Shown: one piece after another, positions 18,601 to 64,000 of the stretch | How positions within the stretch are numbered: the stretch's first letter is position 1 | Layout of the letters: the number at the start of each line of letters is the position of its first letter | Assembly: GCA_964036045.1 (NCBI GenBank) | Contig: OZ038378.1 | Span: 175,460,001-175,524,000 of the forward strand | DNA from: Eutreptiella sp. 'Long Island Sound 2002' | Lineage: Eukaryota; Protista; Euglenida | Direction of reading: 5' to 3' | Length of the DNA: 64,000 nt | Position numbers and translations under genes: made by a program | The notes under the pieces: generated by a model | The model's input: only the letters and a program-made list of their open reading frames with translations | Told to the model about the DNA's origin: nothing | The model's database searches: none

Positions 18601-21600
18601 GTGTAGTGCATGCCCCGTGCACCACAAGCTCTACATACACTGTGCACGCTGCACACTGCACTTTGTATATTGTACAAGGCGCCTGGTGCACACTATACGA
18701 CATGTGCTCCATGGACAGCACCCTACGCATTCTGCACAGTCCACTCTGTACCTTGTCCAATGTCCAAACGGGCCATTTTCAATGTTCTTTTCAACGTTTT
18801 GTGCACTGGAAAGAGGCAACGCGGACCTAATATATGTATGTAAAGATGTGTTTCACCATCTCAAAGGTCACTGTTGGGAAAACATATTTTCGCCTTCTTG
18901 GCCACAGGATCATTTCAAGGTTCAAGGTGTGTGTTAAATCCGGTCAACAAAGCTCAAACCATCCTAAAACCTTTTTAGCACCGCAAAGCCGAAATGCAAT
19001 CTGTGAGCATCTGGCAATCTGGCAATTCCAGGCTGCTGGCCATGCAGGGATCAGAGACTGTGGGCGATCGCAGTGATCTAGCATTTGCAGCGCAGCGTTT
19101 GGTGCTCGAAGCCCCCCGCCTGTGGGTGCGTGCAGCGGTTCCCCGTGGCTGTGGCTTTGTGCCCTGGTCCCTCCCCCTGTGGGTCCTTTCAGAGGTAAGA
19201 GTGGGTCTGCCACAAAGCACTGGCGATGAGGACTTGATCCGTAGCAGCAAGGGTGTCCAGCGGCAGAGCCGGCACCTGCTCCGTTGGGCTGGCTGGCATC
19301 TGGGAAATTCTTTTTTTAAAGGTTTTTTTTTTAAGGTTTTCAACCCTTTTTTGGACCCTTTTTTGACCCCTTTGCAACCTGTTTTGGGAACTTGGACATG
19401 GGTCAAGAAGAGTTCAAGCCAGCCTAAACGCACCTTTTCAGGCACCCCAAGTGGTCTGGGGGCAATTTTGTCCAAAATATTTTTTGACGAGATTTTCCCC
19501 CGCAGGTGACTGCTGGTAACCCTGACCAAGTAATCCGCCATCAAAATTTTGGCGGAATTTGAACCACCACAACAGAGTTCTGATTTTTCGCCATTTCACA
19601 TGCACTGCCGCTGCTGCTCGCTTCTATTTGCTAAAAGGGGTAGCGGGATATAAAATTTTACTGGTTCCACCAGATTGGTGACCCTAGCCCTAACAAGACT
19701 GAATACTTAGCTTGCAGCACACTTGAAGAACATACACCATCCACCAAGTATGCATAATGGTACCCCCCCCCCTTTTTGCAATCCCCCCCCCCCCCCCTTG
19801 CAATCCCCCCCCCTCTTGGGGGGGAACCGGCCTGACAAAAGGGGAGAGATTGCAAGGGGGGGGGGTACATGATGCAAGCAAACCCACACTTAGGTTAGCT
19901 GCCTCCGTTTGACCCTACACAACAAAGTGATTCATACCACCGGAACGTTGTAACCCAGGGTTGGGGTTAGTATACGGATTTAGACTTTGCCTTACTGCAA
20001 CCTTAAGTGCCCCCTTGCCTTCCACCCCCCTTCCCCCTTGGCTTCTTGCCCCCCCCCTAGCCACCTACCCCCACCCCACCTGCCCCACCGCATCCCCCCG
20101 TCCATGGAAACCACAGAAGTTCTTTGGTCCAATTGAGCCCTTTGGGGAGCCCCAGCCAGGGGGCCTTTCACCCCCCCCCCCCCCCTTGAGGTTGATAAAC
20201 TGCCCACCCCAACAGTCTGTAGCCCTCTACAACCCTCTACTACTTGAAAGCCTTGCTGCCCTGCAGTAGCTCAAAATACCCTGCCAAACACCCCGCCACC
20301 CGAGCAGTCCAAAAGCTCGGCAGCTCAGACACCCAGTTGTTCCGGGGCTGCTTGAAAACCTTGCTCCCGTGTAGCAACTCAAAAAGCGCTACAACTCTAT
20401 GGCAGCTCAAAAACTGTGCTGCTCTGCCTGCCTCAAAGTCCTTCTCTCTGTGCTTGCTTAAAACCCTTCTGCCCTTGTGGGCTTTTCAGACGCCACAAAG
20501 CAACAGGGTTTGAGCAGCCACAGGGGGCTTTGGAGCCGATGCAAAGCAGCAGCCACAGAGCGGCAGGCTTTCAATTGGCACCAGGCACCTCGGCGTTTGC
20601 ATTGCCACAGAGCAGCAGGGTGTACAGGATGCAGGGTTTTGAGTTGCCACAGGGCAGTGGTGTTTGAGCTGCTACAGAGCGGAAGTTTCTGCAGCTGCCA
20701 CATGAAGACAGGGCTTATGAGTTGCATCAGAGCACCAAGGTTTTGCAGTTGTCATAGAATAGCCCCCTCCGGTGCATCAGCGAAGTTTTTGTCTAGACCC
20801 CCCCCCCCAAAAAAAGGGGGATATGCATTATTTTTTGGGTACAGCTTCCATGGTTGGTTGTCTTTTTTGCCGTGACCTTGTGATAGTATTGTACTTGGTT
20901 GTGTGTTTGTCATTTTTCCTAACACATTGCACGGTTTAAAGGAGTTGGAGTTTGTACCCCCCCCCCCTCTTTGTGTAAGCCACGCCCTTGTCCAAGCTAC
21001 AGCGGGCATAGGGACTGTATTTATTGGGTACCTACTTTGATTGGTTACAAATGTACTGCAGCCCACATAGCTTTGATTTTGGGGATATTAGTGTATTATA
21101 TTCCCATGCAATCTTGTCTTTCTGAACCTGGGTGTCAACAGTAGGCGTAGGGACCATATTAATCTGGTACTTTGGCGTAGCTTATACAAAGGGTTGGGGG
21201 TAGGACTGCTGTGCGATTTTTCTTATTGTATTGTTGTAGGAAAAATACATCTGCGCATTGCATCAACATGCTTTCTCCGTTTCTCTCCCTCTCTCTCCTA
21301 CCCCCGGCCCCCTGGGGCACCCTGAGCGGAAACCTGGGCCTGGGTTACAATTCCCAGACCAATGTAGTGGAGAGCACCCTCCGAATTTCTAGATCCTGGA
21401 ATGACTACATGTGAACGCTGTCAGCATTGGCAGGGAAGATCGCGCCAAGGGGGGCAGTCGCGGGAATCCTGAGCAATGGGACATGCATTCCATTCTCACC
21501 ACAAAATTGCCCCCCCCCCCACACACACAAACCTGGACGATCACAAAGACATGGCACTGGACACCGGTTGTACCCCAAGGCAACCTACAAGCCTTCATGG

Positions 21601-30039: not shown

Positions 30040-31231
30040 TGAGGAATTGTGGTCACACCTGCTTTCTTTCCGCCGCTACAAGTGAGCCAAAACGACATCT
30101 GCCACAAGCCATTGCAGACTAAGCATTCTGTTTTCCCAAACATGGAAAGTGGCGTGATGATCCTGAGCGGTCACCTACAAGTGTTTTGCATGTGCTTCAT
30201 GCTGCGTTGCTGTTTCACTGTCGTGCCATAGTCCTTACAGCGCTTTGCAACACTGGGAAATTCTATTGGTGCTTGTTCTGCAGAATACACACTGTTTGCA
30301 GACCCCTAGTAGCAGAACCCCTACTGTGCAGCTTTTTGACGAGCAATGTGAAGTGTTGCCTGACTACCATTTGTGATTTGTCTCTGATTGCAAAAGGGTG
30401 TTAGAGTGAAGCATTGTCTGTGTGACACAGAGTAATGTGCCTCTCTACACAGGCTCTTGTTGGTGCAAGATGCACTGTGTCATTGTGTTCCCAGCAACCA
30501 CTGAGAACAGTTGAGCGTTTCGTACAACATTATGGGACACCTCAGTCAGGTTCCTCTTTGGTAGCACCATGCCATGCGCCTCTTGTGTCCCTCTGTCACT
30601 TGTGCTGACACTCGAAACATGGAAAAATGGTAAAATGTTCCTTTTTCGACCCCCCCCCCCCCCGCATCAGAAGCTGGGTGAATGCACGTTCCATTTGGGT
30701 GCAATTGAGGTATTCCTCCTGGGGGCGTGCTGTGACACCTGCTTTATTGCCACCACTACAAGTGGACCCAACGGACCACTGACACACACCCATTTTGGAC
30801 AACCCACTCTGATGGCCCAACTCTCAAAAGTGGCCTGCTTTGATCGACCTAGCCGGTGAAAGGTTGGGATCCAGCAGCGTGTGGAGGGTACTATGGCAAG
30901 GACACCAGAGACTGTTGGATGTTTTCTTCCTTTGGCAGTCTAACAACAGTGGAACTCAATGTAGTGGTGCAAGTGGTGAAGGGTAGAGCCTTGTTTGTGG
31001 ATGCAGAGACTGTGCATTAGGATGGTTGAATGAGCATCGATGTGGTCCACCCCAGAGGCTTTCAGCCTCATCAAATGGGGCCCAAGCAGCTTTCAACGTG
31101 GTCTCAGGGGCTTTCAACCTGCAGGAAGCCAAAAAGTAGGTCATGGACCCAAAAGAAAACTCGCGAGGGGATTTGGGTGCATGCCCGGGGGGCGACTCCG
31201 CGGGTCCTAGGACACCAACCACCCCCCCCCC

Positions 31232-32245
31232 CTCGGGTGTTTTTTGGCGACCACCGCGACACGGCGGGATACATCTCCCTCGGGGAGGAACAAACCAACA
31301 ACCGCGGGGAGCTACGGGTGGCTCTCCGCAGTCTGCAGGGGCACAGGGAAGGGTATCAATCCCAGATCTGTCCTGACTCGCTGGTGGTGGTCAATGGAGT
31401 ACTAGGCTGGGCACAACGATGGCGCAGGCATGGATGGCAAAACAAATCAGGGGCAGTGGCACACGTGGACCTGTGGACACAAATACTCCACGTGGTCGAA
31501 AAACCGGCGGAGGCCATGAAGTGGCTTCATGTCCCCTCCCACATCGGCATAAGGGGCAATGGACAGGCGGACCACCTGGCGGATGTAGGAAGATGCCGCT
31601 CCCCTGCTTTTTGGGCTCATCTCCATCCCCCCCCCCCCCCACACCAAAAGACGAGGAATCAGACCACGAGCAGGAAGAGTCCATTTGGGGGTGGGAGGAG
31701 GAATGTATCTCGCAGCCAACGTTAGCGCCCAGTGCGGGTATGGATGTAGACACCCCACCGGGATCCCAGCAGGGAACGCCGGCCAAGCCAAGGTCACCAC
31801 CGCCAACCCCGTTGGGGGACATTGAAATCTGCACGCCGATATAGGTAAGCAAGAAGCCCCGGTTACAAACGCCAGGGTCCACCATCCCCTGGCGCGGTGT
31901 GAAACCGCCAGGGGCTAGCGGGGCAGACCGAACGCCCGCAACACGTGGGCGGCACCCCACCCCCCATCGAGTGGGCCCGGTACGCACGACGTTCTGGACG
32001 CCACAACCGAACTCACCACTATCTCCGCAGGCATCCGTCCAGCTACTAGCATCGTTGGAGCTGGTGGCAATGGAGGGCGAATCCCCCCTTACCCCCCCGC
32101 AGCCTGAATTTTTCAGACTCGTCACAGGAGACCCGCTCAGACGGATCCGCGCCGGCCTCTCCCTCCACGGCTTCCACGCTGTCATGTAGCACGGAAGGAT
32201 CGCGCTGCCAAACCCCCTGAATGTTGTGTGTACTGCGTGCACTAA
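31232..32245 (+). mobile_element. 5'-truncated non-LTR retrotransposon fragment (RNase H and 3' tail)
   Basis: QTNNRGEL...PDS...WAQRWRRHGW...VAHVDLW...WLHVPSHIGIRGNGQADHLA, then an acidic tail; homologous to the RNase H domains at about 38.2 kb and 44.5 kb. Confidence 0.85.
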
Positions 32246-35268: not shown

Positions 35269-36119
35269 GTAAAGACAATCAACAATCTTCTTTTGTGTTG
35301 CATATTTGCCTCATGCTATGTCGAGTTGCGGCCAAGGATTTCCACGCTTCGGTGTTGCCCCTACATGCATCACGTTTTCTTGCGCTTTTTTAGTCAAGTG
35401 CTCCACAGGGTGGTCCCCCTTGCAAAAATTTTGCCAGCCCGCACAGTGCCCAAACCCAAACCTGTGTGTGCTTGGTCTCAGGCCCTCCCCTTCTTAGGTC
35501 GATCTGTAGAAAGTTCCAAGGAGCCACTCTTGGTCTCAGGCCCTTCCCTTCCCTTCCTCGAAATGTTTGGGGAGGAGGCTTGTGCAAGTGTGGTGTAAGT
35601 GGGGAGGGGTGATGTACCGTCATGGCGTGTGGTTTGAGGCCACCACCCCGAGTTGCTATGGCTACACTTATGCACTTGCATTCCAATCCCTATATTTATG
35701 TATGTCTTGTGCCATTGTGTAACACTAATTCCCAGTGTGGCTGGGAATACCCAAGCCGATGATGCCCTAGCCTCTATTGGGGCAAGGGGCGGTGCAAACT
35801 GTCGGATTGCGCCGGGCCTGCATGCCCAACTGTTCGGAGGTGCCCGACCCCCCCCCCCTGGGCAAAAGCCCCCCGGACCCCCCCCCCCCTTCACCCATCC
35901 CTGCCCCCCCTCCCAGCCCCCCCCCCCCCCACAACCAAAACACGTTCGGGCCCACAGAGGGTCAGAATGAGCAGTGGCGAGAGGCCAATAGGCGCCGCCA
36001 AAGGCAAACAATCATCTACAGAGGCTTTGTGCCACCCCCCCCCCCCCTCTCAGGAGGCCCTTGGCCAATGGTTAGTGGGGGGGTAGTTGGCATCCAAAAC
36101 CTACCCCCCCCCCCATGGC

Positions 36120-39038
36120 TGCTTCAGAAATGCTTTCCCCACGATGTCTCATGAGATGGTGTCGGCAGCTCTGGGTCTGATGTGCATACCATTCTTGTAT
36201 ATCCGCCTGATTCTACACCTCTTGCGTGCACCGTATCTATACTCCGTTGGAAAAGGATACGTCCCAGGTGTTTACCATTATCCGAGGGCAGGCACACGCC
36301 AGGGGGATCCACTCTCCCCGGCGCTGTTCTCCCTGGTGGCATCCTTCGTGATTTTCCCACTACAAGACCTGGGTCCAGCACTGACTGTCATGATGTATGC
36401 AGATGACCTCATCATTTTCTTTGATGGAAGAGCCAACCCACAGCTGTTGAAAAGGGTATGGGAAGTGGTTTCACGTTTTGGACAATTTTCGGGGTTGAAG
36501 ATCAACCTGAACAAAACGGCAGCGATAGTTCGCAACTGTGGGGGAATGGAGTGGGCGAGATGCTTTCGGGACATTGGAGTGGACGTCAAAAACTTCGTCA
36601 AGTATCTGGGTGTGCGCTTGGGGAATATTCGGCACCAACAAGACGACCAAGGATGGGGGCTGACGATAGAGCAGGCCTTCGCACCAGCACTGCAAGAGGC
36701 CTTTCGTCGCGCCAAGGTGGTATCCACGCTGCAACTGTCCATGAACGAACGTGCATTCATGCTGACATCATGGATTCTACCGGTCGTGGCATGGGTATCC
36801 AAGGCATATTACGCCCCGGTCTCGGTGATCAGACAACTGAAGTTGGTGTATCACGTGTCTATGGGTACCAACAGCTGGGGAATCACTCTACCAATCCTAT
36901 CAAGACCAAGAACGCAAGGGGGACTGGCACTACCGGAACCAGAACTGTTTCTTATGCACCAGGCAGCGGCTCCGTTCGTCAGCCTGTTGGGAGAGCCTCA
37001 CAAATTCCCTGACAAGGCAGTGGAGACCTTCTATGCATGGGCAACAGCCATAGGGTTCACACCATCCAAGGACAACCTTCCATATATTCAACTGGGCATG
37101 GTCCGAACGGCAGATCTCACATTTTTGGGATGGTCGGCGAAGGCACACTCCAACATTCAGCGAGTGGCCCCGCAGGTGGCCCCCCCGACAAACCGGGACC
37201 GCCTGCCGTTGTGGCACTCGGTGTATTTCCGAAATGAGTTCCGCTGCTCCTACTACAACACGAAATTGATCCGGCAGGGGGTGCTGACGTGGGGTCAATT
37301 CCAAGCATTGGAGGACGCAAGACTGTTCAATGCACTGCCTCGGACATGGAAAGGGGTCTACAATCATGGCGGACGACTCCTCAACAAAGTCCCGTCAAAA
37401 GGGGGGTATGATACCCCTGCAGTCCACACCCAAAACTGGACCAGGGCATGGCTGCTTCAGTTTTACGCCTCTCAGCCAGGGGTCCGCGACCCGCAAACGC
37501 CGGAGGTATGGGAACAGTTTGCACGGGCACAGCTACCGCCGAGGGCTCAAGACTTTGCGCGCAAGGCATCGTGGCACAAACTGACCGTACATGCAAGAGT
37601 CTACAAGAGGTCAGGCACCGACAAGTGCCCGTTGTGCTCACAAAAGGAGACGGTTAAACATGCGATGGTCGAATGCCCCATGTTCAAAGCGGCAGCGGCG
37701 GTGATACAGCATTACTATGGCCAGGTGACAACTGAAAACGGGACATCCACAGTTTGAGATATGATGGAGTCCGACGACCAAGAATGGTTGCTGAAGACGA
37801 ACCAAGGCTGGGCGATGTGGTCAGCAAGAAGTGCCCATTGGCGATATCGATGCGAAGTCAAGGCAGGAGCGTCGCCAGTTTTCACGTCATACCTTACAAC
37901 ATGGCTCAGGGAGCTATGTGAGTGGGTGGGATTCTACACAGGGGAGCGCAGGGAACAATGGAAAGGTTTTCAAAAGTCACTGGAGCAACTTCGAGACACC
38001 GGGGTGCAGCCGCGACAAGGGGAAGTGCAAGTACATGGGGGACTGCATGCGTGGTGGCAAACACACACGGAGTGCTTCACCCAAGAAAAATCAGCCGACA
38101 ACCATAGTTGGCAAAGGGCAACAGAACCACGTCCGAAGCGCCCGAGGCAGGCAGGCCCGGGAGTGCTACAAGGAGTGCAAGATCTGATTGCAGAATTGGT
38201 GGAGAAGGGCTACAGGATAGTGTACACTGATGGGTCGTCGAAGAGACTGAGCCACAAGGACATGTGCAGGGCTGGGGGATTTGGCGTGTTCGCGGCGGAC
38301 GACCACCAAGGACCAGAGGTACGCTTCTGTGGCTACGTACCAACACATCACAGGCAAACAAACAACGGGGCAGAGCTTTGGGCAGCCGTGGAAGCCTTAC
38401 AGGGATTCTGGGTGCCAAAACTGGCAATTCTCACCGACTCGCAGTACCTGCAGTTGGGAGCGACTGGCAGGGCCCAACACTGGAAGTCAAAGGGATGGAC
38501 AACCTCATCTGGAAAACTGCAAGTCCACGTCCCAGTCTGGGAAATCCTGCTCTGGGAAATGGCAACGCCGGGACGAGAAGTCAGGTGGGAACATGTCCCA
38601 GCACATGTCAACGTGCAAGGAAATGAAATGGCGAATGGATTGGCCATGGAGGGCATGTGTTCCAGCCCACTATGGTCACAGCATGCTGCACCAACATCAT
38701 CATCGGGGTCAGACTCTACGGTAGGTTTGAGGGGAGGGTCGGGGTCAGAGTCAGAGGGCACAAGGGCACTCTGGTCTTCCTTGGGTATGGTACCCATGGA
38801 CAGTGATGAACTGACAGGGGAAGCATCCGGGGAGCCAGCGCCACGTGAGATGGGACCGTACTCCTCAAGCAGTACAGAAAGTGAGGAAATGAGGACAGGG
38901 CACACAAACCAGGGAGTGCTGTCGAGTGCACTGTCAGCAGCAGACACACTGTCCTTCAGCACTGATGTGAGTGACACCAGGCGACAGCGCAAGAAGCGAA
39001 GGCTCAGGAAGCGCAGGAACTTAGGACAGGGTCGATAA
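36120..39038 (+). mobile_element. 5'-truncated L1/Tx1-like non-LTR retrotransposon ORF2 (RT, Zn finger, RNase H) with one in-frame TGA at 37755
   Basis: RT motifs GTRQGDPLSPALF, YADD, KYLG; CPLCSQKETVKHAMVEC; RNase H YTDGS, TNNGAEL, TDS, HVPAHVNVQGNEMANGLA; ORFs 36087-37757 and 37761-39038 share a frame. Confidence 0.92.
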
Positions 39039-40045: not shown

Positions 40046-41730
40046 AGATGCACCAAGCAACCCGAACCCCCTTTTTTTTTGGGGTGCGGGAGAGAGGGAA
40101 AGAGACACAAAGTTAGAGAGAGAGAGGGTAGAGCACGGTGAGAAAGGAACAGAGAGGCGCAACAGTAGAGGATGAGCAGGGGAGAGCACGAGAGAATGGG
40201 AGGGAGAGAGTAGGAGAGAGACCCACAGAGCGAGAGACCGGGGCTAACCGGCGCAAAGGGAGGTGGTGGGTACGAGCTGACCAGGGTTCGGGCTGAGCAG
40301 AGTGGGCTCGAGCAGAGCGAGGTGAAAGGGACGCCACGGAGACACGGAACAGTCAAGAAATGAAAAAGCAGGGCGCCGTAGCGCCCCTGAGCCACAGGCA
40401 CAACATGTTGTCACGTGTTGCACAGCCAAAGCACGACTGGGGCGGCGAGAGTGCGGCCCATGTGAGGAAGACGAAAGCAAGTAGGCATGAATGTGTGGGC
40501 GGCATGCGCATGCAGCGTGGGGAGCAGACGTGGTATGCGCCACACGCATAACAGCAATGATTTGTTGAGTTGCCTGACAAACGGAGCGCATGCTGAAATT
40601 CTGAGACGCCATTGCGCCAACCAAGGCGCCATTGCGCCCCTAAGGATGGAGTATGACACGACCTCACGACCTGCAAGGCAAGGGTTAGAGACTAACCGGC
40701 ACTGTGGGTGGGTGGTGGGTGCGAGCTGACCTCGATGTCCAGAGGAACAGTGCCAATGCACAGCCAGCAGCCACCTGGTGTGGTACAGAACTGGTCTACG
40801 CTGCAGTGCAGCAAGCAAAACACTGAGCAATGTGGTTATGACCATGCGCCTGTGACACGGGGGCGTATGCGAGCCCAGTTTCCGTTGCCTCATGGCCCCA
40901 TGGCTGCATGTACGATATCAGGGGTGCGCTTCCCAGACCCTCTTGCCTGCACTGCATACATGGGAATGCAACACATTCAGGTCCCTTTGGGAAGCTCTCA
41001 TCGCATACCATCGCTAAAGCTGCAGTCTTTTGGCCTTTAGAGGTTTTGGAAGAGGCTTGGGATCCCCATGTGGTACTCTAGTCCAGCGGCCATTGCTAGT
41101 GGCAAGTCGTCACCCTCCCTGCCCCTGCTGTCCTGCATTTCCCTGCACCTTTTTTGGCATTTTTTTTTGCATATCTTGCACACTTTTGAATTTCTGGTTT
41201 TCTTTCCCGCTTCCCCCTTCCCCCCTCTAGTGCAGAACACCCACAGGGAAATCAATCATTGCTGAGCGTTTTAAAGGGGTGTAGGAGGGTTGTGGGTTGA
41301 TGAGAGATGCATAGCAGCCTGGAGGTTTGAGGTAAGATCCGATGACAAGGATGTGAGCACATTGTGGTGGATGTGAGAGTTATTGCTTTTGCTGCTGATA
41401 GTGGCATCTGTGTTTTGGAGAGCAACCATTTTCTGCACAAATGCGTACAGGGTCGGGGACGCCCATAAGTCTACATTCAGCTTGGAGCCTCAGGCAAAAT
41501 GCATGCTTGTAAGGCGTAAGTGCAGGAGCATGAGATCCCTGATTGCCATTTCCCCTGACCTGGCTTTGCTTGTATAAGTGTAAGCGGAGCTAGAAGGATG
41601 CACAGCCGTTTGGAGGGTAGATAGGGCTTTCTGAGTGCTTGTTTGCACTGATCCTTCTGTTGTAGTGTTGAGCTGGTGGCTGTGCCCTCTATTGGGGCAA
41701 ATGGGCAAGAGAGGTGGGGGTACCGTTCAG

Positions 41731-42672
41731 CACATTGATTCCCACAAGAACAGCGCCCAATTCAGTTACCCCTACGGCATCAAAAGATCGAAGCAAAAGG
41801 TTCCATCAGAGGCCCCAGAGAAACTGTACTGGAGCCTGGCGGGTTCTGCAGACAACAAGCTGAAGGAGGTGCTCCCGTACATTCACAATGTGGAGCAGTG
41901 GAAATTCAGCTTCAAGTATCTCACGAGCCCCGGTGCGCGGAACAAACTGCGCCGCATGATCCAAATCAACACAATAGACCGGTTGTTGCGAGGCAAGTAT
42001 TGGCTGGAGGACGGCAGAGTGGTTGCTGTCGACAAATCTGCGCTGCTGGAGTCCATCAAGGGCACGGTCATCCAAGATTTGAAGGGGGTGCACGATCGTG
42101 CACCCGCCGCAGACGACTCTGTGCCCTGTGGCGTGACAGTGCTCCATGGAGATGTCCTGCAGGCCGCCCACTGGCTGATGCTCACAGGCGGGGCCACTAG
42201 CCCGTGCATTCTGAATCCAGCCTCAATGACAAACCCTGGGGGCGGCTACAGACACGGAGCCGGTGCCTTGGAGGAGACCATGTGCCGGCGTACCAGCCTC
42301 TTCATGAGCCTCGAGGACCCATGGCACATGGACTCAAGCCGAGAGTGGACCTACCCCATCCCTGAGTTTGGTGGCATCTACTCTCCGCGGGTTCAGGTGG
42401 TGCGAGATACTGAGGCCCTGGGATATGCGTTCCTTCCTGCGCCGTTTGAGGTGGCCATAGTGTCTTCTGCGGCATATGCACAGCCTGCGGTAGACATTCT
42501 GCCTGATGGGACTGAGCGGCTGTCCAAGTCCCTTGCAGTGCACACCCGCAAAAAGATACACGGGATTTTCTCCATCGCACATCAGCAGGGACACGATGCG
42601 TTGGTCTTGCCGGCCTGGGGCTGCGGCGTATTTGGCAACCCTGCACAGCACATTGCAGCCCTCTTCGGCGAG
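41731..42672 (+). CDS. TIGR02452/DUF2263 microbial-type PARG-like macrodomain protein, major exon
   Basis: LNPASMTNPGGGYRHGAGALEETMCRRTSL, GIYSPRVQVVRD, LVLPAWGCGVFGNPAQHIAALF; donor GTCAGT at 42673; acceptor position tentative. Confidence 0.85.
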
Positions 42673-42938
42673 GTCAGTTTCTCTTTGCTCCCCCCCTTAC
42701 CGCCCTCCCAACCCACCATCCGTCCCTCCCAGAAGACACTTGGGCCCACCGACATGTTGAAGTCGTCTTGCATGAGGACCGTGGATGGCGACACTGTGCA
42801 TTCCAACATATCTTCATTGGTCATTTTCAAAGGGATAATCTCATGGCCTTGCTCCTCCATTGATCCCTGTTGGTGTGTAGAAGTCTAACTGAGCATAGAA
42901 ATGTACCCCCCCCCCCCCTTGTATAAGCTACGCCCTTG

Positions 42939-43528
42939 GAGGGCCGAACGGGCGTGAGTGAGGGCAGGACGAGAGAGACCACAGGGGAGGAGCATACCAG
43001 AAACACGCGTGGCTCCCTTGTCACCATTGGTGGCGAAGGCGGCGGACACGCAACCGGGGATCGGCCGACGTGGCCGATTTGAGCCTTGAAGGTCTGCACT
43101 AAGTGCAAACCGCAGCAGCAACCGCTGGGGCCAGCGGGGGGGGAGAGGCCTGGTGGTTGGAACGGCCGGTACACAGCACATCGGACAATAGCATATCGGA
43201 AACACGCTTGTCTCCCACGTCATCGGTCGTGGGTTCGAATCCCGGCGGGCAGGCCGCTGGGGGTTCGTCGTAGTGGACGACACGGGGGGGTGGTTTTTAC
43301 TTTTGGAGGTACAAGCCAGCTCAACCCAGTTCCTGCTGAGGGTAGGGAGGGAGACGTGACCTATCCTGACGAACTGTGGCGGCGCCTCCGGCGCCGTATC
43401 TGAGGATGAGCTGTGGCGCTTCGCTGGACAGATGGGACAATGTGTGTCGCGGCTCCGCCGCGTGATACTTGATGAGGGCATACGTCTGTCGGTGGGGACG
43501 TATTGCTGGACTTTCCACCGCTCTGCAG
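42939..43528 (+). mobile_element. SINE-like insert with a tRNA-Gly(CCC)-like segment and a LINE-homologous 3' tail
   Basis: TAGCATATCGG A-box (43189), CTCCCAC anticodon-loop-like motif, GGTTCGAATCCC B-box (43232); 3' about 150 bp homologous to 45215-45352; flanked by a 16-bp direct repeat. Confidence 0.75.
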
Positions 43529-43544
43529 ATAAGCTACGCCCTTG

Positions 43545-45352
43545 CCGGTGTGGCATAATGCGCTCCTGACGAACTCGCTACGCCTGACCTATCACTGCCC
43601 TGCCTTGCTGAAGCGCGGGGTAATGCGGTGGGGGGACCTAGTGGAGGACGGTGCTATCCCCCTAGTGTTGTGGGAGCTGCTGGCACCGACGTGGCAGCCG
43701 GTGTACTTACGCAGGGTGGGGGAAATCCTCGGTTCCAGCGACCAGTATCAGGGACCGGATTTGGGGAGGTGGGGACAGTTGTGGACGTCGAGGAAGATGT
43801 TGCTGTTCATGTTACACACGCGGCGGCATGCGCCGCGGCAGCCACCACCAGTGTGGCAGGCGTTTGGACGGCTCCACCTACCCAGGTGGGACAGAGATTT
43901 CATCCAGCGGTGCCTGTGGAAGAAATTGCCTGTGGGCACGCGCATGGAGCGCCTGGGGGGGAAGCTGTGCCCGTTGGACTGTCGGGTGGAGGACCATGAG
44001 CATGTTTTTCGAAACTGCTTTTTCAGCAATTTCATGTTTGACACAGTGCGGCGGGCCTTCGGGGTAGTACAGGGACCATCAGGGGTGGTGGAACCGAGCC
44101 GGCTGCTGCGTGATCACCCCCTCCTGTCGCTGACCACAACACAGGGTTTGCTCCTATGGGCGGGGCTCAAGGTACAGTGGAGCCTGTGCTGCCGGGCCAA
44201 GTACCAGAAGCAAATGCCAGTTTTGGACGAATTCATCGCTGGGTGGGCGGGGGTGTTGCGGCGCTGGCGCGCGGAAGTGAACATGTCCTGCTCCAGGCTG
44301 GATCTGTACACGTTTGTGGAAATTCTGGACGGATGGTTCAGTGATCCGGCAATGCCGGGTATTTTTAAGGGCCCGGCGCATAAGCCCACGACGGCACGCC
44401 CGCCGCGAACCTTGGATAAATTGGCGCTCAAAGAGGCGAAGTGGGGAAAATATAAAAATGAAAAAGTGCAGCAGCTGGCAGCCTTGGAGCAGGGGGGGTG
44501 GACAGTGGCATATACTGATGGGTCGGCAAAGACGGTGCGCGGTTGGGCACAGGCGGGTTTTGGGGTATGGTTTCACAGGGGGTCCCCTCGGAACCATTCA
44601 GCCCATGTGCCGATTAGCGAACGACAGTCGGTTAGCAGGGGGGAACTGCGGGGGGTACTGCACGCAGTACTGGCCAGGCGCCCTGGCGAGAGATTGGCGG
44701 TGGTCATGGACTCGGAGTACGTTTTTAAAGGAATTATGGAGTGGTCCCCAAAGTGGCGTCGGCATGGATGGCGCGCGTCATCAGGGGACGTGGGGCACAG
44801 GGACTTGTGGGAGACCATTCTCTGGGAGCGGGAGCGGGCGGGGGATGAGCTGCAGATTCACTGGATCCCATCGCACCTCGGGGTGCAGGGTAATGAAGAG
44901 GCGGATGCCCTGGCAGAAGCAGGGCGCCTGTCCCATCCGGACAATGGCAAGCCTGTGGCCAAGAGACCACGGGTGGAACCGATGTGGGAGAATTTGGGGC
45001 TGGAAGAGATGTCGTCAGAGGTTTCCAGCTCACAGAGATCAGAGTTCTCGTCTGCGACAGTGTTGGAGGCGGAGGACATGGAGAGTGCGTCTACCTCGAG
45101 TGAGGGATCGGAAGGGGGGGGCTCGTCGTCAGGCTTCAGCACGGATGTCAGCACTAACCCCAAGAGGCGCAGAGGCTGAAAGTGCACCTGCCCGAAGGGA
45201 GGGAGAGCAGCACTATCTGTGGCGGCGCCTCCGGCGCCGTATCTGTGAACGATCTGTGGCGGCGGCTTCGCCGCCGTATTGATGACACTGCACGTTTTGA
45301 GAGCGTGGGTCTGTCGGTGGGGACCTGTCGCTGGACTTTCCACCGCTCATGG
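43545..45352 (+). mobile_element. 5'-truncated L1/Tx1-like LINE (Zn finger, RNase H, 3' UTR)
   Basis: Uninterrupted ORF to 45179: CPLDCRVEDHEHVFRNC, YTDGS, SRGEL, MDS, WIPSHLGVQGNEEADALA; flanked by ATAAGCTACGCCCTTG. Confidence 0.92.
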
Positions 45353-46079
45353 ATAAGCTACGCCCTTGTCCAAGCTACAGTAGGCGTAGGGACCGTATTA
45401 ATTTGGGACCTAATTTTAATTCGGTACCAAACGTAGTGCAGCCGCATAAGGCATGGGTTTGGTGACGGATTTGCGAGTCACATAGAGTCATGGACACATT
45501 TGTTGTGAGTGTTTGCCATTTGAACCCAGATAGCTCTGATTTTTGGGATGTTTGTGCATTATATGCCCCTTTCTTGCACTGGCTCACCATGCAATCCTCT
45601 CTTTTTGAATCTGGGTGCCCGGTGTTGGTAGTTGTATGTGTTGCGCGCAAGCTACGCCCGTGTCCAAGCTACAGTAGGCGTAGGGACCGTATTAATTTGG
45701 GACTTTGGCGTAGCTTATACAAGGGGGGGGGGTAATCTTCTAGCAACTGTTGAAGATGCATTCACACCTTCGCATCCTGACACTTGTAGCTCTGCATCAA
45801 GAAACATGTTCTGACTGACAACAGCACTTCAATTGGTTGTATGAAGCCGGCAGGTAACCAAACATGGCTGCAGACCCAGATCCAACATAGGTGGATGGCA
45901 AGGAGCAAGGTTGGCTGAACCTGTGTAAACAGCTTGCTGACCAGGAGATGGGAGCAGTACTGTAACGGGACTGAGCACCTGGAGTTCGAGAACACATTTG
46001 CCCTGCTGTAGTCCTGCTCTGTGATTTGAATGTGTTGTTGGGGCCATCCCTCCCTCTCCCTCTCACATGCTCTCCGCAG

Positions 46080-62029: not shown

Positions 62030-64000
62030 ACACAAAATGACAGAGCAAATTGCCATCTTCTTAGCCACAGGCAGAATAACGGAGGAATGGGCACTGACCA
62101 TCTTAAACCCGAAACGGAAGGGAACAATTTCTGTCGACCACCTCAGACCCTTGTGCTTACAGAGCGTCCTATTCAAATGGGTCTCTATGACCCTATATCT
62201 GATGCTCCAAGACCTTCTTCTGTGTGCCACCCCCCCGGAGTAGAAGGGGTTCATGAAAGGAAGGTACATATTCCAACACATGTGGGAGGCCCGAGCTGCG
62301 TGGGAAGCGATGGAGTATGGCCTGTTCATATCCATCGACTTTGCAAAGGCATTTGATTCGGTTCACCACAATTACTTTATTGCTTTCTTCCAACATCTAG
62401 GCCTCCCTCCCCCCATGATATCACTCATACCGTCCATGCTCACTTCACCCTTTGTGTTTGGAGTGGGAAGGGGCGTGGTGTGCACAGTGCAGGTAAAACC
62501 AGGATCAGGGGTAAGACAAGGGGACCCACTCTCTCCGGCGGTTTTTGCCATGGTCTGCTCCGTGCTCATACCACAGCTCCAGGAGGTCTCCCCTGCAATA
62601 CGAGCCTTGTTCTATGCGGATGACCTCATGATTTACATCCCTATCTCACCTTCCCTGATTATCCAGCTGCTTCCCAACATCATGCAAGTCCTCAAAACAT
62701 ACACCAAGTTTGTAGGACTACACATCAATGAAGACAAGTCAGCCTTTTTACTGAAGGGATTTTGGTCGGACAACCAGCGAAAGAGGCTCACTGACAGAGG
62801 AATACCTATTAAAGCCAAAGTCAAGTATCTAGGAAACCTTTTCGGACAGGTATCGGCGGAGGAAGCCTATGCCCCACACTTGGCCCGAGCGATCGTGCTA
62901 GCACAGTTTGCGGCCATCCTGCCCCTCACTCTCCCGGAAAGGGCACAGGTTTTACAGGAATGGATCCTCCCTCTGCTGATCTACCCGGCCCGAGCGTACT
63001 TCCCAACTGAGGAAGTGCACAACAAATTGGCTCATATATACAGGATAGCCTTGCGTGTCAGCAGTTGGGGCCTGACGCTCCCCATCTGGCAGCAACCACC
63101 CAAATTGGGAGGCCCGTCGCTCCCCAAGCCTTCGGTATACCTTCTGTCGCAACATGCCACACACTTTGTCACATCCAGGGCGGAACCTGCAACCCTCTCC
63201 CCAATCTCAGCTAGACACTTTGAGGGCTGGGCGCGCAGATTCGGAGTGGCAGCGGAACTGGCTGATCTTCCCTGGTTTCAGCTGGGACCCATCCCCTGGA
63301 ACACCTACCCTTTCGTAGGGACCTCTGCAAAGGCATTCTCACTGCCGAGAAAACAGGCCCCGGTGATACCCCCAAATGCGGACCAGGTGGCCAGACGGAG
63401 CTGCTGGCATTCAGTGCTTTTTCGGGACACTAACAAAAACACTTACTTCTCGCCGAAACTCATTTGGGCAGGGATCACGAAAATACGATAGCTAACGCCG
63501 CAAATGCAAACCACGCTAACCCCCACCTGGCTCCCCACGCACCAGGCACACCTGAGGCAGCAATGGCCACCGCCACGCCTATCCCCCCCCCCCCCCCAGG
63601 AAACGTTAGCCATCTTCTGGGGAGGATGGAACACGAAAAAGATGCTGCATTACCTGATGCAGCAGCAACCACCAGAGCCTAGGCAAACACCTGAGGTGTG
63701 GCAGACATGGAGCAAGCTATCACCGCCGGCCAAACATCACACATTCATGCAAATAGCATTGTGGAAAAAAAATACCAGTAGGGCTAAGGCTGGCCAACTG
63801 GCTCCCGCACAATGTACCCTGCCCCATCGACGGACAAGTAGAGGATGTTAAACATGCACTGTGCGACTGCTGTTTCCTCACCCCTGCATTCCACATCGCC
63901 CAACAATGCATGGGCCCCGCAGTGCTGGAAGATCTCACGGAAAGTGACCCGCAGGTTATCCTTTGGGATCAACCGGCCCTCTCCCTCCAAACCCCCCTGG
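62030..64000 (+). mobile_element. Degenerate L1/Tx1-like LINE ORF2 (RT), runs off the window
   Basis: LRPLCLQSVLFK, stop at 62241 in PPE*KGF, IDFAKAFDSVHH, GVRQGDPLSP, YADD, KYLG; frameshifts after 63491, then a CPIDGQVED..H-type Zn finger relic. Confidence 0.9.

Follow-up and report, generated by a model that had tools for sequence, protein, structure and literature searches.

Why should one 16-bp sequence occur three times within a small inverted-repeat DNA element, each copy lying against a piece of retroelement? The window analysed here, 64,000 nucleotides of contig OZ038378.1 of Eutreptiella sp. 'Long Island Sound 2002' (positions 175,460,001 to 175,524,000 of the forward strand), contains a miniature inverted-repeat transposable element (MITE) interrupted in this way, which raises the question of whether retrotransposons struck the same base twice and whether they recognize it. 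The best explanation of the whole, and in our judgement a very probable one, is that the left terminal repeat of the MITE was hit twice by target-primed reverse transcription, by copies of two lineages of long interspersed nuclear elements (LINEs) designated B' and A. Across the genome, insertion into this MITE end is target-specific and consists of independent events with duplication of the target.

A MITE end struck twice

The first-pass annotation, made from the sequence of the window, had the local geometry right. The 16-mer ATAAGCTACGCCCTTG occurs exactly three times (at 42923, 43529 and 45353; chance expectation 0), and its copies set apart a 590-bp piece (42939-43528) and a 1808-bp piece (43545-45352) whose 3' tails align and which share their final ~50 nt as well as a hairpin motif, GGCGCC. 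Taking out both pieces and two of the 16-mers, so that 42906-42938 is joined to 45369-45732, restores a 397-bp TA-flanked element that aligns end to end with a 244-bp copy at 20957-21200. The outer ends of the composite are ~27-bp inverted repeats, poly-C followed by TTGTATAAGCTACGCC, with TA on both flanks; the pairing of the left end with 45706-45732 was read directly, and TA also precedes the poly-C in most other copies. The 21-mer CCCTTGTATAAGCTACGCCCT of the left end occurs 1295 times in the 2.28 Gb of genome that we searched. With its ~27-bp inverted repeats, TA flanks, length of 244-397 bp and 1295-1534 exact ends per type, the target element is a MITE with Stowaway-like, Tc1-mariner features: terminal inverted repeats, TA duplication, small size, abundance and no coding sequence. 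The features of the locus are as follows, with a slash marking the position of the nick.

42904-42905: TA flank of the MITE on the left, read directly; the partner TA is at 45733-45734
42906-42938 (+): left end of the MITE, comprising poly-C, TTGT and the first 16-bp target copy (42923-42938)
42939-43528 (+): 5'-truncated fragment of LINE lineage B'; tail ends ...CGCTCTGCAG
43476-43507 (+): conserved stem-loop of the lineage B' tail (RNAalifold)
43529-43544 (+): second copy of the target-site duplication, 16 bp
43545-45352 (+): 5'-truncated fragment of LINE lineage A; tail ends ...CGCTCATGG
43968-44018 (+): Cys/His motif CX3CX7HX4C, a zinc knuckle of the L1 type that follows the reverse transcriptase (from the translation)
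44505-44924 (+): RNase H domain (Pfam PF00075, RNase_H, E 1.4e-23)
45301-45332 (+): conserved stem-loop of the lineage A tail (RNAalifold)
45353-45368 (+): third 16-bp target copy
45363-45383 (+): second landing site, empty, CCCTTGT/CCAAGCTACAGTAG; used by lineage C only
45369-45732 (+): remainder of the MITE, in which lie the right inverted repeat (45706-45732) and, subterminally, a direct repeat of 55 bp
20957-21200 (+): another member of this MITE family, shorter and diverged, neither of whose sites is occupied

The sequence of events that we propose begins with an abundant TA-flanked MITE, whose left terminal repeat would have been struck twice by target-primed reverse transcription. The bottom strand would be nicked between the T and the A of CCCTTGT/ATAAGCTACGCCCT, a position that maps between 42922 and 42923 for the first strand, and cDNA synthesis would be primed at this nick. 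If the top strand is then cut at a fixed distance of 16 nt further on, a 16-bp duplication would result, of which only the copy adjoining the MITE end would keep the full site, so that later insertions would enter there. Both inserts would be 5'-truncated, dead-on-arrival copies from different sister lineages, B' (590 bp) and A (1808 bp), of a LINE whose predicted layout is an open reading frame (ORF) 1, an ORF2 with an apurinic/apyrimidinic (APE)-type endonuclease, reverse transcriptase (RT), Cys motif and RNase H, and a structured 3' untranslated region (UTR) without poly(A).

Target specificity across the genome

Two insertions at one base had been the ground for claiming site specificity, and whole-genome counts of tails, junctions and empty sites uphold the claim. 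The tail word GGACTTTCCACCGCTC occurs 330 times, against a single occurrence of a control word, and ATAAGCTACGCC follows it within 2-6 nt in 260 of these. The target core is likewise present in 29 of the 30 best LINE-A tails, a sample chosen blind to flank, most of which continue into the MITE. At the other end of the inserts there are more than 30 distinct 5' truncation points, each after TA, poly-C and TTGTATAAGCTACGCC(CTTG), and at these 5' junctions TTGT, after TA and poly-C, leads into the same 12-16 nt, frequently with microhomology or a few filler bases. Where the duplication is a variant, it is identical on both sides of the insert (loci L004, L015, L014 and L034, and the right-end loci L038 and L013). 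The uninterrupted 30-mer across the empty site occurs 1425 times, which leaves at least 1425 MITE ends unoccupied, and in contigs from public short-read runs, which are collapsed at repeats, the empty-site form predominates. Tail counts, varied truncation points, two-sided variants and empty sites together lead to true target-site duplication by independent retrotransposition events, and the lineages have what may be called a Tx1-like lifestyle, with most copies at one defined, duplicated sequence.

Because the duplication variants match on both sides of the insert, the 16-mer must belong to the target and not to the element. The opposite reading, that it is the elements' own 3' end or was transduced from a donor locus, with no target specificity at all, could appeal to the presence of the 16-mer after nearly every tail and to a few copies in which non-MITE DNA follows it (L020, L014). 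However, the 16-mer also precedes the variable 5' ends, where its variants co-vary with those on the other side, the 1425 insert-free MITE ends carry a single 16-mer, the sequence past the 16-mer in L014 is the 5' end of another LINE, and an off-target insertion (L055) lacks the 16-mer altogether. The co-varying duplications and the empty sites refute this reading, and we regard its probability as close to nil.

An origin at the DNA level, in which one or a few composites were copied by MITE transposition, segmental duplication or gene conversion, deserves slightly more consideration, since there are whole-locus duplicates (L014/L024 and L026/27/28), a 2445-bp tandem repeat (L053/L054) and a cluster of ten 5'-intact ends at C1:186-187 Mb. 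Against this, truncation points differ in nearly all loci, similarity between loci ends at the MITE end save in the named duplicates, and the 5' junction of the window LINE has no second occurrence in the genome with up to 2 mismatches, so that we find such an origin very improbable. The suggestion that the retroelements are moved as MITE cargo fares no better. It called for a composite MITE with identical cargo at several loci, and neither an all-against-all comparison of loci nor the junction search yielded a shared composite; similarity beyond the MITE appeared only in whole-locus duplicates. The multicopy target may, as proposed together with the cargo idea, confer a safe-harbour benefit.

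Three regions of the genome deserve mention. L053/L054 (equivalent to genome C3:11295035-11298068) has at least three tandem copies of a 2445-bp unit that contains the MITE with a B' insert, a DNA-level duplication of an occupied site. The interval C1:186.05-187.14 Mb holds 10 of the 20 exact 5'-intact LINE termini, all on one strand at irregular intervals of ~23-340 kb; three of them precede a tail by ~5.65 kb, and the interval has probably undergone segmental duplication. At C1:168423220-168430342, nine empty-site 30-mers lie at ~886-bp spacing, each accompanied by a right-end motif at a distance of 62 nt; what is repeated in tandem there is a unit with a very short MITE derivative, not a retroelement.

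If the duplication regenerates the target, as the first-pass annotation had reasoned, arrays should be able to grow, and tandem arrays are indeed found at the site. They are common, given that ~30 of the first 100 tails have another tail on the same strand within 3.1 kb. They grow on the side adjoining the MITE end: in L007/8 and in L033, the insert closest to the MITE end is flanked by a duplication in which 2 nt stem from the 5' junction of its older neighbour. From these two neighbour-derived bases it follows that new insertions enter the copy that bears CCCTTGT, and that the second cut is fixed at 16 nt whatever the sequence there. By this polarity rule the B' fragment in the window would be younger than the LINE-A fragment.

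The same MITE end contains a second site, 17 bp further in (CCCTTGT/CCAAGCTACAGTAG), at which a third lineage, C, with a tail ending ...CACTGTTC(T)ATGG, makes a 14-bp duplication; C-type tails lie, among other places, at C1:6.26 Mb. Lineages A/B and C are exclusive for the two sites. A/B tails are found 260 times at site 1 and 0 times at site 2, and C tails 319 times out of 711 at site 2 and 0 times at site 1, which amounts to no cross-use in ~580 insertions. CCCTTGT stands directly before the nick at both sites and at the off-target insertion in L055. Round the nick, the right MITE end agrees with the left in 19 bases (CCCTTGT/ATAAGCTACGCC) and then reads AA where the left has CT; it holds 7 of the 260 insertions despite similar abundance (1534 copies vs 1295 of the left type). 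Since the right end is rarely used despite the shared 19 bases, the stretch that is recognized begins with CCCTTGT and extends as far as position 13-14 after the nick, if not further. On this comparison of sites, recognition would span roughly 21 bp across the nick and would require the upstream CCCTTGT, and it may be a domain of the protein or a feature of the RNA that reads the site.

If RNA were the main source of specificity, a read-through transcript carrying the downstream target would anneal to the nicked site in the manner of R1/R2, the site of the donor would in effect be 'inherited', and the zero cross-use of sites 1 and 2 would be explained. Base-exact 3' junctions without poly(A) and the mutual exclusivity of tail type and site are what such a mechanism would produce, and one contig from an RNA library crosses the LINE tail into the MITE. 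This contig may, however, be DNA carry-over and is from another copy, and in the contigs from public short-read runs we saw no LINE transcript ends. The left end is preferred ~36:1 despite identical first 12 nt, which annealing of a few bases alone would not give, and the off-target insertion in L055 still lies after CCCTTGT, which points to a protein reading the upstream half. We therefore consider specificity set mainly by RNA to be doubtful. A division of labour may be somewhat easier to accept, and we offer it tentatively: three sister lineages split two near-identical sites of ~21 bp (CCCTTGT/AT... and CCCTTGT/CC...), and RNA would carry part of the discrimination. If this is true, it would be the first such system described outside animals.

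Two copies outside the usual setting bear on the range of the association. The ENA contig L055 carries, at 2529-2855, an off-target B' fragment outside any MITE, with an 11-14-bp duplication and directly after CCCTTGT. In another ENA contig (L051:8900-9700), a C-type tail is followed by CCAAGCAACAC, twice in tandem, in a diverged relative of the MITE, and the LINE is a relative at 58% protein identity. The association of LINE and MITE appears to reach other MITE subfamilies.

The two inserts and their lineages

The 1808-bp piece had been called an RNase H LINE, and its translation bears this out. An open frame of 545 codons runs to 45179, followed by a 173-nt 3' UTR, and includes the L1-type Cys motif and an RNase H domain (listed above) in which the D, E, D and D residues are in place (YTDGS, GELRG, MDSEY, EEADALA) and whose PDB matches are RNase H1/HI. 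In the longest LINE-A copy (L046, ~3.8 kb), RT, Cys motif and RNase H share a 903-codon frame. The best match of the RT among solved structures is human L1 ORF2p, ahead of R2, and its named relatives in the databases, at 25-29% identity, are L1-like proteins of plants that carry APE, RVT_1 and zf-RVT domains. For zf-RVT itself, the related window copy at 36087-37757 scores above the Pfam cut-off, and P0003, P0004 and one ORF of L056 give weak matches below it. The lineages are L1-like retrotransposons that lack long terminal repeats (non-LTR), with RT, Cys motif and RNase H.

The type of endonuclease was to be read from a full-length copy, and this could be done in part. Closer, unnamed relatives (P0007-P0010) have the N-terminal motifs QETH, DHNS, RIDRVHV and SDHKAV, and hhalign matches their N-termini to Pfam-annotated plant L1 APE domains with 97.5% probability (E 6.8e-12). 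A group of ENA contigs (L051-L057), reached via the predicted proteins, includes a 5'-intact B' element of 4744 bp (L056) that lies in a MITE end between perfect 16-bp duplications and in which a 534-codon ORF1 is followed by the opening 92 residues of the APE domain and then, past an internal deletion, by RNase H and the UTR of 590 nt. The ORF1 (L056:11980-13584, minus strand) matches no Pfam family. Of the 20 genomic occurrences of this element's 21-nt 5' terminus, 16 come immediately behind the target, and L014 has this terminus after a LINE-A fragment. Profile comparison and motifs thus assign an APE-type endonuclease to the relatives and, putatively, to lineage B'; lineage A, for which neither a full-length copy nor an endonuclease came to light, presumably has the same type. 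A LINE of the restriction-like-endonuclease type (R2, NeSL, CRE/SLACS) was also considered and set aside, as only the Cys motif and RNase H come after the RT. The related copy L051 has no endonuclease upstream. The tails of lineages A and B' share a conserved stem-loop, with an 11-pair stem and 2 compensatory pairs (RNAalifold, 10 tails), which is a likely handle for the RT.

The 590-bp piece raises a different problem, since the first-pass annotation took it for a tRNA-containing short interspersed nuclear element (SINE) that had borrowed its tail from the LINE. The piece is non-coding, shares the terminal 50 nt and the stem-loop with the LINE, includes a B-box-like motif and is spanned over all 590 nt by at least 40 genome copies, all of which speaks for a true LINE/SINE pair. 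However, ARAGORN found no tRNA in it (default, 95, 90 and 80% thresholds) and Rfam gave no match at E<=1, which leaves just a B-box-like GGTTCGAATCC at 43232-43242. A 26-nt word across the junction of the LINE ORF with the 590-nt sequence occurs at 42 places in the genome, a control word at 0, and each of these places joins the start of the piece to the end of a LINE reading frame. Of the eight copies identical in the first 20 nt, only the window copy has the target within 39 nt upstream, and the junction word sits 13 nt upstream of each of the 7 others. The tail, moreover, is of type B (TGCAG), unlike the adjoining type A; the first 100 tail-plus-target matches comprise 65 tails that end in TGCAG and 35 that end in ATGG.

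The continuity is visible base by base in L052 and L053, where the LINE reading frame runs into the 590-nt sequence; in the ENA contigs the frame upstream of it ends ...DNPRKRGRRAERT, and a stop codon falls within its first 20 nt. The interval 42939-43528 accordingly contains the last 5 LINE codons, a stop at ~42955-42957 and an entire 3' UTR. Because the sequence continues directly from a LINE reading frame in other copies, the 590-bp piece is a 5'-truncated copy, essentially the 3' UTR, of a second LINE lineage, B', whose ORF is 82% identical to that of the B copy in L007. With no tRNA or Rfam head and with upstream continuity into a LINE ORF, the piece falls outside the SINEs, and the tail that it has in common with the LINE is trivially expected of that LINE's own 3' UTR. 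A true LINE/SINE pair is in our view largely refuted, and improbable. Within the B' 3' UTR we also observed two similar internal segments (~42985-43040 and ~43190-43260), besides the B-box-like sequence, and the UTR may possibly have captured a small-RNA-like module.

Several points weigh against the account given here. The exact core is missing after 70 of the 330 exact tails, some of which lie at mutated targets, and L019 and L055 are genuine off-target or rearranged insertions. Array polarity rests on two arrays. No full-length LINE-A was found among 20 loci taken with 8 kb upstream (maximum 3.8 kb), and its longest copies, L046 (3.8 kb) and the ENA copy L057 (3.1 kb), are without an endonuclease. 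By Pfam the APE domain is a weak, sub-threshold match to Exo_endo_phos, the PDB profile search returned no APE, and an AlphaFold2 model of the endonuclease region from a 4-sequence alignment (pLDDT 39) was unusable. Finally, L051-L057 were taken as the same organism from matched spacings: the 4744-bp length of the L056 element corresponds to a spacing at C3:116.5 Mb, and the 2445-bp tandem copies in L053/L054 to a spacing at C3:11.29 Mb.

The neighbourhood of the composite offers some further observations. An open frame at 41635-42888 that encodes a PARG catalytic domain of the microbial type (Pfam PF10021, E 6.9e-22) stops just before the MITE, so that the composite lies within or beside a PARG gene. 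Another 5'-truncated LINE, with RT, zf-RVT and RNase H, occupies 36087-39038; it is of a more distant family, with an RNase H 35% identical to that of the LINE at 43545. More LINE pieces lie at 31030-31725 and 62253-63491.

Relation to known systems

What remains of the initial proposal is real: a well-supported case of target-specific LINE insertion, from which the SINE and cargo claims should be dropped. For genome annotation it is a reminder that short 'SINE-like' pieces beside LINEs can be truncated 3' UTRs. More broadly, site-specific LINEs show how retroelements can multiply without damage to the host, and they are starting points for tools of targeted DNA insertion. The natural data here are clean, with hundreds of insertions, thousands of empty sites, two exclusive adjacent sites and a readable order of insertion in arrays. 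If RNA does guide part of the discrimination, the two sites would form a re-targetable pair provided by nature, with which the reading of long targets by APE-type LINEs could be dissected.

To our knowledge, the APE-type LINEs described to date as recognizing a long site within another transposon are the animal Tx1 elements, of which Tx1L, as far as we know, lacks RNase H. The same lifestyle is now found in a distant, protist-like genome and in an L1-like lineage that bears RNase H; in the library that we searched, no paper dealt with elements of this kind from euglenids. In domain order (RT, Cys motif, RNase H) the lineages resemble plant-type L1 with zf-RVT and RNase H, which also supply the best named relatives of the RT, although the similarity to the present RT is low. 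Plant L1s have poly(A) tails, and we know of none that is site-specific. Among the Euglenozoa, ingi/RIME and L1Tc/NARTc of trypanosomatids are APE-RT-RNase H LINEs with non-autonomous partners, which have a conserved insertion motif and prefer the multicopy RHS gene family; the named relatives found here are L1-like, not ingi-like.

The closest precedents are Tx1L/Tx1D of Xenopus and Tx1-Mar/SINEU, and the present case works likewise. To call the locus a candidate new system is an overstatement in view of how close these precedents are (PMC4494074). As outlined in the same source, Tx1L inserts into Tx1D in Xenopus laevis (Christensen et al. 2000, as cited in PMC4494074). There too a LINE enters one sequence of a multicopy DNA-transposon-like element and composite elements arise, although Tx1D, unlike the present MITE, resembles piggyBac and is entered at an internal repeat. 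In crocodilians, the non-autonomous Mariner-N4_AMi is the target of Tx1-Mar LINEs and SINEU, whose insertions make 16-bp duplications and occur in tandem, and truncated copies served to show that the insertions were independent (Kojima 2015, PMC4494074). The likeness is close: LINEs of the APE type, putatively so here, that favour certain positions in an abundant TA-type DNA transposon without autonomy, a duplication of 16 bp, tandem inserts that sandwich a duplication, independence argued from 5'-truncated copies, and several related LINE families at one target. The likeness is one of lifestyle. The host here is a protist-like genome of 2.28 Gb, the present LINEs have RNase H after the Cys motif, and no SINE partner is demonstrated. 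Unlike that of Tx1-Mar, which lies in the transposon interior, the present target is within the terminal repeat itself, where two sites 17 bp apart are divided between lineages without cross-use.

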